Notes under the pieces: model-generated
Told to the model about the DNA's origin: nothing
Seen by the model: only the letters and a program-made list of their open reading frames with translations
Database searches by the model: none
In this document: in pieces, positions 45,401 to 48,400 of the stretch
How the letters are laid out: each line of letters opens with the position of its first letter
How positions within the stretch are numbered: the first letter of the stretch is position 1
Translations under genes and position numbers: made by a program
Source: Octopus sinensis
Taxonomy: Eukaryota
NCBI RefSeq assembly: GCF_006345805.1
Contig: NC_043005.1
Span: 88,350,001-88,414,000, forward strand
Direction of reading: 5' to 3'
DNA length: 64,000 bases

Positions 45401-48400
45401 GTTCTCTAGTAGAGAGTGAGACAAGGCTGGCCCCTTTCGAATACAAGTACAGCTCATTGTTGCCCAGTTGAGTGGACAGCAGCAATGTGAAATAAAGTGT
45501 CTTGCTCAAGGACATAACATGCTGCCAGGAATTGAACTCACAACTTTATGATCACATGCAGAACACCCTAACACACACACACATATACATAGTGATAGTG
45601 ATCCTTTCTTCTTTTTACAGGTCCAGAAAAAACTCATAAAATCTCTTCCAGATATTATTGCCTTAAATTGTGGCCTCGACAACCCTCGTGATATAGAATT
45701 CTGGAAGACGCAGTTACAGGTGAGTTTTTCACTCTTGATATATTTTTTTGTTTGTTACCTTCCAATTTTGTTTATTTCACATGAGTCGCCTCCTCCTCTC
45801 ATCCCACCGTGTAAAGTCACCTATGCTGGTGCCATGTATAAATCACCCATGTTGATGGTGTAAAGCATTTGTGGTTGGTGCCATCTAAAAGGCACTTGCA
45901 CTGGTGCCACATAAAACTACTTGTTGTGCTGGTGGCACATCAAAAGCACCCACCACACACTGTCGAGTGGTTGGCATTAGGAAAAGCATCCAACCATGGA
46001 AACCATGCCAAAACAAACAGTTGGAGCCTGGGGCGACCCTCCAGCCTTGCCATCTCCTGTCAAACTGTCCAACATATGCCAGCATAGAAAACAGAGTTTA
46101 CATGATGACAATGGTGGTGGTGGCAGCAGTGTACATATATATATATATATATATATATATATATATATATATATATATATATATATATATATATAATATG
46201 TATACACAACCATGGTTGATGCTAGTGCCACCTGACTGGCTCCCGTGCTGGTGGCATGTAAAAAGCACCATTCAAGCATGGTCAATGCCAGTACCACCTG
46301 AATGGCCCTCATGCTGGTGGCACATAAAAAGAACCCACTATACTCTCGGGGTGATTGGCATTAGGAAGGGCATCCAGCTGTCGAAACCTTACCAGATCAA
46401 ATTGGAGCCTGGTACAGCCTTCAGGACAATGATGATGATGATATATATATATATATATATATATTTTGTGTATGTATGAATCAGTCAATTTTTTTCTTTG
46501 CAAAATAGTATCAACTGGTTACAAGTCCCTGCTGAACAGTTTTTATTTCAGAGATTTCCTTCTCCTTGACAGATTATCTTTACTACGACTGGTGAATTTT
46601 ATATTTTATTTTGATTTTGATTTTGATTTTATTATTAATTAGAGGAATGAGAGCAATGTCTTTTTTTTATAGCATTTACAAATTCTTGCAGATGTGTGAG
46701 TGAAATGATGTAGCTAATGCTTAATCCTGAACCTGTCCAGGAAAGACCTGGAGTTGGGGTGGAATGTGGAACCAGGCAACTTGTTAAAGTACTCTGGATC
46801 TTCACTTTACATGCAAATCAGTTTCACAAGCAATTTTTTTAACATAAAATCTCTTTCAGGTGATGGATGACCTTCAGGAAAGAATTCGTGAACTGGGGTT
46901 CTTCTGGAACATAGTTGTGATTTCTGTGATATTTGACTTTAAAAAAATAATAAGGTTTCTTGATTTTTAATGTGGGTTTTTTTTCTATTCTTTTTGTTTT
47001 TCCTAAGATTATCAAAAAAGACAGCACAGAACAGAAGGAAGAAATAGCTAGTCCAAAGAAGAAACTGTGTCGTTATGGTAAACTCTGTAAACGGAAAGAT
47101 TGCTTCTTTCGGCATGAACCAAACCCACAGTGAGTAATTTTTTTTTTTCCTACTCTAAGAACTAGGCTCGAAATTTTGGGGGAGGGGGCCAGTCAATTAG
47201 ATTGACCCCAGTATGCAAATGGTACTTAATTTATCGACCCGAAAAGGATGAAAGGCAAAGTTAACCTCTGCAGAATTTGAACTCAGAATGTCAATCATCA
47301 TCATCATCATCATCATCATTTAACGTCTGCTTTCCATGCTAGCATGGGTTGGACGGTTCAACTGGAGTCTGGGGAGCCCGAAGGCTGCACCAGGCCAGTC
47401 AGATCTGGCAGTGTTTCTACAGCTGGATGCCCTTCCTAACGCCAACCACTCCGAGAGTGTAGTGGGTGATTTTATGTGCCACCGACACAGGTGCCAGACG
47501 AGGCTGGCGAACGGCCACACTCGGATGGTGTTTTTTATGTGCCACCGACACAGGTGCCAGACAAGGCTGGCAGACGGCCACGCTCGGATGGTGTTTTTAT
47601 GTGCCACCGACACAAGTGCCAGATGAGGCTGGCGAACGGCCACGATCGGATGGTGTTTGTTACGTGCCCACAGCACGGAAGCCAGTCGATGCGGTACTGG
47701 CTACGGCCACATTCGGATGGTTTTCTTGTGTGCCACCGGCACTGGTACCACAAAGATACAAATTCCATTGATGTTCATCTATTTTGATTTGGTTTGATTT
47801 GATTTTCACTTGCCTCAACAGGTCTTCACAAGTGTCACACACTTGCCTCAACAGGTCTTCACAAGTGTCACATACTTGCCTCAACAGGTCTTCACAAGTG
47901 TCATAAGAAGGAAGGTATGCACAGGTGGACTGACTACGTCCCAGGTAGGGGCCACGGGTTATGGCCTGACTAGTCTTGCCGGGTCTTTGGATGGTGTTTT
48001 TATGTGCCACCAACACAGGTGCCAGATGAGACTGGCGAACGGCCACGATCGGATGGTGTTTGTTACGTGCCCACAGCACGGAGGCCAGTCGATGTGGTAC
48101 TGGCTACGGATGGTTTTCTTGTGTGCCACCGGCATTGGTACCACAAAGATACAAATTCCATTGATGTTCATCTATTTTGATTTGATTATGATTATTATTA
48201 TTATCACTTGCCTCAACATGTCTTCACGAGTGTCATTTGATTTGATTTGATTTGCACTTGCCTCAACAGGTCTTCACAAGTGTCATAAGAAGGAAGGTAT
48301 GCACAGGTGGACTGACTACGTCCCAGGAAGGGGCCACGGGCTATGGCCTGACTAGTCTTGCCGGGTCTTCGGACAGGTGCCAGATGAGGCTGGCGAACGG

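Follow-up and report, generated by a model that had tools for sequence, protein, structure and literature searches.

A Nab2-type CCCH zinc finger predicted within the pseudo-USP domain of octopus PAN2 and of many animal and choanoflagellate orthologues

Main

A 64-kb window of the Octopus sinensis genome (the whole stretch of 64,000 nucleotides analysed here) carries a gene that, judged by its sequence, is PAN2, the catalytic subunit of the PAN2–PAN3 deadenylase, and one exon of this gene encodes a small CCCH zinc finger inserted in the pseudo-USP domain. The explanation that we consider probable is that the insertion is a single, constitutive Nab2-type finger carried on a surface loop of the pseudo-USP domain, where it is predicted to read poly(A). 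For the window itself the finger is an ordinary orthologous feature, recurring at this position in dozens of PAN2 orthologues, from choanoflagellates and most of the invertebrate groups sampled, and it appears to be an ancestral property of PAN2 that has been overlooked.

Reviews and a 2025 preprint describe PAN2 as a WD40 domain, a linker, a USP domain and an exonuclease, and place the zinc finger on PAN3. In the full-text literature that we searched, PAN2 is nowhere credited with a CCCH finger, although one may be annotated automatically in PROSITE, SMART or InterPro. Solved PAN2 structures are all fungal or human, and most of the biochemical work on PAN2–PAN3, like all of the structural work, has used proteins from these sources, that is, finger-less ones; reviews accordingly assign the only zinc finger of the complex to PAN3. 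The first-pass annotation of the window, which proposed the finger, knew of none in yeast or human PAN2, and neither these proteins nor that of Neurospora crassa turned out to have one.

Results

The PAN2 gene model of 24 coding exons (Table 1) was built by tblastn and junction optimisation against the full-length protein P0171 (1228 aa), whose cluster includes PAN2 of the cuttlefish Sepia (Acanthosepion) pharaonis. All junctions are AG/GT with consistent phases, and the product of 1129 aa contains zero stops, the last ~96 codons lying beyond the end of the window. A candidate for exon 14 near 38200 proved wrong, the cuttlefish-cluster protein putting this exon at 38603-38790. The predicted protein is 76.1% identical to P0171, 77.4% identical to Sepia pharaonis PAN2 (P0313) over 1072 columns, and 46-53% identical to PAN2 of Tenebrio, Lymnaea and Saccoglossus. 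A Pfam scan recovered PAN2_N (PF20770; residues 48-345, 318.9 bits against a cut-off of 26.6), UCH_1 (PF13423; residues 499-934, 314.5 bits) and RNase_T (PF00929; residues 1010-1127, 31.4 bits), the last at profile positions 1-108 of 164, the domain being cut by the window end. These domains uphold the initial identification of the gene as PAN2. According to the literature, the USP domain of PAN2 lacks the catalytic triad and is a pseudo-enzyme; the finger falls within the UCH_1 envelope and is therefore nested in this pseudo-USP domain, as had been supposed.

Table 1 Coordinates of PAN2 and of the zinc-finger insertion within the window
Feature	Position	Strand	Remarks
PAN2 gene, coding exons 1-24	6184..62422	+	ATG at 6184
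PAN2 exons 1-6	6184-6426, 10094-10263, 13121-13241, 14579-14656, 16975-17093, 17750-17894	+	
PAN2 exons 7-12	18570-18711, 20264-20340, 21525-21652, 23026-23189, 23681-23838, 29223-29351	+	
PAN2 exons 13-16	31523-31672, 38603-38790, 42070-42218, 44850-44956	+	
Exon 17	45621..45719	+	USP strand and FWK helix directly before the insertion; aligned with orthologues
Exon 18	47008-47129	+	N-linker, CCCH finger and start of C-linker; 122 nt, phase 0 to 2
SPKK, minimal CDK-consensus-like site in N-linker	47050..47061	+	Read from sequence
Nab2-type CCCH zinc finger (predicted)	47068-47115	+	Protein residues 810-825
Zinc ligand codons (predicted)	C1 47068-70, C2 47086-88, C3 47101-03, H 47113-15	+	
Exon 19	50290..50419	+	Remaining C-linker and conserved Y/W-x-P strand of USP fold
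PAN2 exons 20-24	52135-52332, 57363-57453, 59331-59485, 61013-61098, 62185-62422	+	
Pseudo-USP (UCH_1) domain enclosing the finger	Exons 11-21, 23681..57453	+	PF13423, residues 499-934
DEDD (RNase_T) exonuclease, N-terminal two thirds, DAEF included	Exons 22-24, 59331..62422	+	PF00929

Exon 18, which carries the finger, was found by tblastn with P0003, P0013, P0010 and P0171 as queries and translates to 40 residues plus a split Q codon. Its acceptor (ttctttttgtttttcctaag/ATT) has a strong polypyrimidine tract and AG, its donor (ACA/gtgagt) has the consensus GT, and the junctions 45719^47008 and 47129^50290 score best against cuttlefish-cluster PAN2. Leaving the exon out would yield FWKTQLQ-EL-stop, with a stop codon after two codons. 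The exon number, the phase 0 to 2 and the frame-locking originally assigned to it are all upheld. The 1228-aa PAN2 proteins of the cuttlefish cluster come from contigs of 4.0-4.1 kb and contain the finger. Contigs of this size are too small to hold the introns, so the finger is present in mature transcripts of those related cephalopods. Exon 18 is thus very unlikely not to be included constitutively, and its inclusion forms one part of the explanation that we judge, as a whole, to be probable.

Translation of the + strand gives exactly the spacing C-x5-C-x4-C-x3-H that was first read there, and this is the single match to it in the six frames of the window. First-order Markov simulations produced 0.2 matches to the spacing per window by chance, and none in 200 runs that combined the spacing with Nab2-type side chains.

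The earlier assignment to the Nab2/ZC3H14 type stands, with spacing, best Pfam family and best solved relatives in agreement. PF14608 (zf-CCCH_2, 'RNA-binding, Nab2-type') ranked first among zinc-finger families, both for the peptide of the window and for each of the five scanned orthologues with the finger, at scores that fall short of its gathering threshold of 25.8 bits (window peptide, 17.4; full protein, 12.2; orthologues, 11.7-19.9). The profile check suggested by the first-pass annotation therefore returned the expected family but at sub-threshold scores. For the Sepia protein PF14608 went unreported in the Pfam scan, and these low scores explain why precomputed Pfam annotations of the orthologues give only UCH, UCH_1, RNase_T and PAN2_N. 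A profile built from 17 PAN2 fingers and searched against all PDB sequences had its best match in fingers 5-7 of Saccharomyces cerevisiae Nab2 (5L2L, 2LHN; E 1.2e-10), the best single finger being Nab2 ZnF6 with 26.8 bits; half-matches to MBNL came after Nab2, TTP reached E 1.7, and no PAN2 or Pan3 chain was among the matches. MBNL fingers, which read GC, also resemble the motif in its second half (C-[ST]-R-x-x-C-K-F-x-H).

As defined by Kuhlmann et al. (PMC3874189), the adenine code of Nab2 fingers calls for a basic and an aromatic residue, in that order, behind the first Cys and for a further aromatic at position +2 from the third; both aromatics together allow a finger to bind two adenosines, and hydrogen bonds between N6 and the zinc-bound cysteines confer specificity. 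We tabulated 60 distinct PAN2 fingers, a set restricted to those with K or R directly behind the first Cys and therefore partly selected for the basic position. Within it the two-adenosine code is invariant (C1+1 Arg, C1+2 Tyr/Phe and C3+2 Phe/Tyr, each in 60/60), Gly at C1+3 and Arg at C2+2 each occur in 57/60, and position -2 is basic in most (K in 49, R in 5; n=60). The x5/x4/x3 spacing is shared by all 60, and with it the Cys and His ligands whose conservation in related species had been at issue. The C-x7-8-C-x5-6-C-x3-H spacing of the TTP/TIS11 or PAN3 type is not matched by these fingers. Nor is there an array of the Nab2 sort among the orthologues sampled, each PAN2 having a single finger except that of Salpingoeca urceolata, which has two; Nab2 and ZC3H14 arrays, by comparison, comprise 5-7. 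Read against the published code, the finger of the window is Nab2-type and of the class that binds two adenosines.

Structural models bear on the type and the setting of this module. AlphaFold, given the exon-18 peptide with an alignment of orthologues, assigned pLDDT 81-90 to the finger and 57-64 to the 20 residues before it. Foldseek gave six PDB matches to this model, all RNA-bound Nab2 fingers, at rmsd 0.4-1.3 Å over 18-23 aligned columns (0.4-0.9 Å over 18-19 for the five best); their E-values of 3-9, above 1 because the domain is tiny, make the structural part alone not significant. For the surrounding protein we modelled P0003, of the orthologues in the homologue search the closest one whose exonuclease domain is complete and which also carries the finger. 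The resulting model (mean pLDDT 78.6) matches fungal Pan2 UCH-Exo structures (4CZW, 4Q8H, 6R9x) at E 1e-38 to 1e-35 and positions the finger between the FWK helix and the W-x-P strand, with pLDDT 62-77 over the finger and <50 over the flanking segments. Across 47 distinct orthologues the linkers vary from 19 to 59 residues on the N-terminal side and from 9 to 38 on the C-terminal side and are poorly conserved, while the finger is of fixed length; between the window and the cuttlefish cluster, 14/16 finger residues are identical and the downstream linker is barely alignable. A fixed finger between variable linkers is what one expects of a small, autonomous module that is flexibly tethered.

The linkers also affected the search for homologues. 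A query with the 117-aa peptide of exons 17-19 found no matches, since the word index requires shared 5-mers and the linkers are too variable to supply them. Representatives were sorted by source names; sorting by the best named anchor was biased to anchors covering the exonuclease domain. Among 143 new representatives (50% identity), the exact spacing occurs in 25 and the variant C-x5-C-x5-C-x3-H in 3. The finger is present at the same site of PAN2 in choanoflagellates (one in Salpingoeca helianthica, the tandem pair in S. urceolata), the cnidarian Exaiptasia, the acoel Symsagittifera, molluscs (the Sepia pharaonis cluster and Lymnaea), the annelid Ridgeia, the chelicerates Caerostris and Rhipicephalus, the crustaceans Homarus and Cyprideis, insects (Lutzomyia, Polyplax, Tenebrio, Aphidius and a representative ~90% identical to Papilio PAN2), the tardigrade Hypsibius and the hemichordate Saccoglossus. 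The nematodes Mesorhabditis and Pristionchus have it there as the x5/x5/x3 variant, which is also found in one representative closest to copepod PAN2.

The finger is absent from PAN2 of birds, of the mammal-like representative P0172, of the tunicate Ciona savignyi, of the ichthyosporean Chromosphaera, of a chytrid, and of N. crassa and S. cerevisiae. Human PAN2 (9QTU chain C) aligns in the flanks but not over the finger segment, and the profile of PAN2 fingers gives no match to it. The Trichoplax model has no finger, but its segment at the site resembles a translated intron, and fish PAN2 fragments leave the site uncovered, so Trichoplax and fish play no part in the distribution. We considered the bird segment KEISLGEWKELGNPDMGH, which is equal in length and shares a G and the H, as a fossil finger, and dropped it as P0172 has no such likeness. 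On the simplest reading of these sequences, the finger would have arisen by the time of the ancestor shared by choanoflagellates and animals and been lost in the tunicate–vertebrate lineage. That the finger sets this particular deadenylase apart is not supported; the survey of PAN2 orthologues points instead to a feature ancestral to choanoflagellates and animals together, which tunicates and vertebrates no longer have. Tunicates, vertebrates and fungi manage without it, so the finger is dispensable for the core mechanism.

Discussion

We propose that the FWK helix and the W/Y-x-P strand are joined by a surface loop in which the finger hangs on two linkers, variable and of ~20-25 residues, with zinc presumably held by C810, C816, C821 and H825. 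The invariant Arg-Tyr pair that follows the first Cys, and the Phe at position +2 from the third, would stack on and hydrogen-bond to about two adenines, making the adenine contact seen in the odd-numbered Nab2 fingers. Wolf et al. (PMC4158885) remark on the weak binding of single CCCH fingers and on possible cooperation between the two of PAN3. A lone finger in PAN2 would likewise bind weakly and so would most likely act by avidity, together with the two CCCH fingers of the PAN3 dimer, which are of a different kind, and with the exonuclease site. An A-tract could in this way be held beside the catalytic subunit, and base-specific selection of poly(A) would be added. We infer on good grounds that the finger binds poly(A), and its presence may alter the dependence of PAN2 on PAN3 or PABP, as the first-pass annotation had suggested. 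A broader and more tentative possibility is that PAN2 in most animals and in choanoflagellates has its own adenosine-specific reader, which cooperates with, or partly replaces, the PAN3 fingers and PABP in capturing substrate or in defining the tail length that PAN2 acts on.

Known systems frame this proposal on several sides. Nab2 of S. cerevisiae and Chaetomium thermophilum (5L2L, 2LHN, 4LJ0; PF14608) has the same spacing as the PAN2 finger and shares with it the basic and aromatic residues after Cys1, the Gly at C1+3 and the aromatic at C3+2; it also supplies the best sequence and fold matches, with the PF14608 score below threshold. Nab2, however, is a nuclear poly(A)-binding protein with seven tandem fingers, whereas PAN2 has a single finger nested in an enzyme domain. 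The metazoan Nab2 orthologues ZC3H14, dNab2 and SUT-2, which we take to have fingers of the PAN2 class and to bind polyadenosine, likewise differ from PAN2 in carrying tandem arrays in a dedicated RNA-binding protein with no nuclease.

The CCCH finger of PAN3 belongs to the same complex as PAN2 and prefers poly(A), two copies per complex acting jointly (Wolf et al. 2014, PMC4158885). It lies at the free N-terminus, unlike the nested PAN2 finger; its ligands in yeast Pan3 (C14, C23, C30 and H34) have the TIS11d-like spacing C-x8-C-x6-C-x3-H rather than x5/x4/x3 (PMC4158885), and the PAN2 finger profile had no match to the PAN3 finger in the PDB. The UCH-Exo structures of PAN2 (N. crassa 4CZW; S. 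cerevisiae 4Q8H, 6R9x and 6R5K; human 9QTU) have the same USP-plus-DEDD architecture as P0003, whose model matches them at E 1e-38 to 1e-30 and TM 0.6-0.7 with the insertion flanks aligned. They lack the finger: the fungal loop has 39-45 residues, and the human one has 78, with no alignment to the finger segment. Other USP domains presumably offer parallels to a small zinc-binding insertion of this sort, among them the B-box of CYLD. That B-box has a different fold and different ligands, in an active deubiquitinase with no link to RNA.

The strongest competing account, which we regard as unlikely, holds that the finger is a zinc-stabilised protein–protein or structural module that reads no RNA, either docking on PAN3, PABP, GW182/TNRC6-type adaptors or some other region of PAN2, or making the USP insertion rigid. 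The host USP fold has a structural role in PAN2 according to reviews, the finger is single rather than part of an array, the core enzyme of fungi and vertebrates works without it, and the conserved basic residue at -2 would fit docking or localisation equally well. On the other hand, the invariant residues other than the ligands are exactly the adenine-stacking positions of Nab2, and unconserved linkers of low model confidence suit a free RNA-binding bead better than a packed element.

That the finger binds RNA off the tail, recognising A-rich or other short motifs in 3' UTRs and thereby giving PAN2 selectivity among transcripts, seems to us improbable. Kuhlmann et al. (PMC3874189) argue that the adenosines read by Nab2 fingers are spaced and that A-rich stretches beyond the tail can be bound too, and half of the motif resembles MBNL fingers; yet about two bases per finger are too few for transcript selectivity, and the substrate of PAN2–PAN3 is poly(A) itself. 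Barely credible is the view that exon 18 lies outside the functional mRNA of this species, being alternative, NMD-coupled or mispredicted, given the stop that skipping would bring, the consensus splice sites, the intron-free cephalopod contigs and a finger that stays nearly identical to that of the cuttlefish cluster while its flanks diverge.

If the PAN2 finger does bind adenosines, the complexes of insects, nematodes, molluscs and many other animals would possess three fingers belonging to two kinds, and one of the three would be tethered to the nuclease, which would bear on the selection of poly(A) and its hand-over to the active site. Should PAN2 indeed have its own reader, loss in the tunicate–vertebrate lineage would represent a rewiring of PAN2–PAN3 recruitment, and the yeast and human models would miss part of the ancestral mechanism. 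The role of the finger can be tested directly in Drosophila or Caenorhabditis elegans.

The N-linker of exon 18 also contains SPKK, which had been read as fitting the CDK consensus. A minimal consensus-like sequence is indeed there, and its counterparts are confined to SPRK in the cuttlefish cluster and TPKK in P0012, with none in the other orthologues; in the sequences compared, the putative site is not conserved beyond close relatives.

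Distribution and form of the finger in related PAN2 proteins

In four PAN2 sequences from JGI (P0007, P0009, P0023 and P0028), the surface loop of the pseudo-USP domain that holds the Nab2-type CCCH finger in Octopus sinensis is short, at 39–52 residues, and the finger is absent from it; further independent losses of the PAN2 finger are possible. Double or variant fingers occur in the related PAN2 proteins P0182, P0286, P0259 and P0173. Two fingers stand in tandem at the same insertion site in PAN2 of Salpingoeca urceolata, while a C-x5-C-x5-C-x3-H variant was seen in two nematodes and in one representative nearest a copepod PAN2.

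The finger-bearing orthologue P0012 was recovered from a Logan contig (L001), where its USP–Exo region forms one 2.1-kb open reading frame (ORF; 1001–3124) and the PAN2_N parts lie upstream of it as separate short ORFs. Introns appear to be few or short in the organism carrying this gene.

Repeats and probable retroelement remnants in the octopus locus

Dozens of copies of a SINE-like repeat, on both strands, occupy the PAN2 introns and the upstream region across the window, with the translation ...HASMGWTV(R/Q)PGSGKPGGC... (20 further residues not printed here). The tandem arrays of intron 18 sit within a ~320-nt repeat, which recurs in intron 13 (31853–32750), and the ORF translations of the two duplicate copies in intron 11 are almost identical.

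Repeats and probable mobile-element remnants in the window
Feature	Position	Strand	Location	Detail
Short tandem array	47470-47668 and 47807-47903		PAN2 intron 18	63 nt x 3.2 + 33 nt x 2.9
Direct duplication	26810-27378 and 27561-28154		PAN2 intron 11	period ~750 bp
Long dinucleotide microsatellites	53400-54100, 46135-46204			(TA)n and (CA)n type
SINE-like repeat, example copies	9135-9913, 28505-29094, 31853-32750, 47281-48860, 52863-53307, 56869-57183, 62970-63514	both overall		
Non-LTR retroelement-like remnants	966-3105, 33065-33436, 55722-56637	-, +, +

The three segments in the last row look like remnants of non-LTR retroelements. A weak RVT_1 match, at 19 bits and under the cut-off, was obtained at 1523–1807 (-), and a Cys-rich, PHD-like ORF lies at 55722–56327 within PAN2 intron 20. 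An ORF resembling the latter is also present in intron 13.
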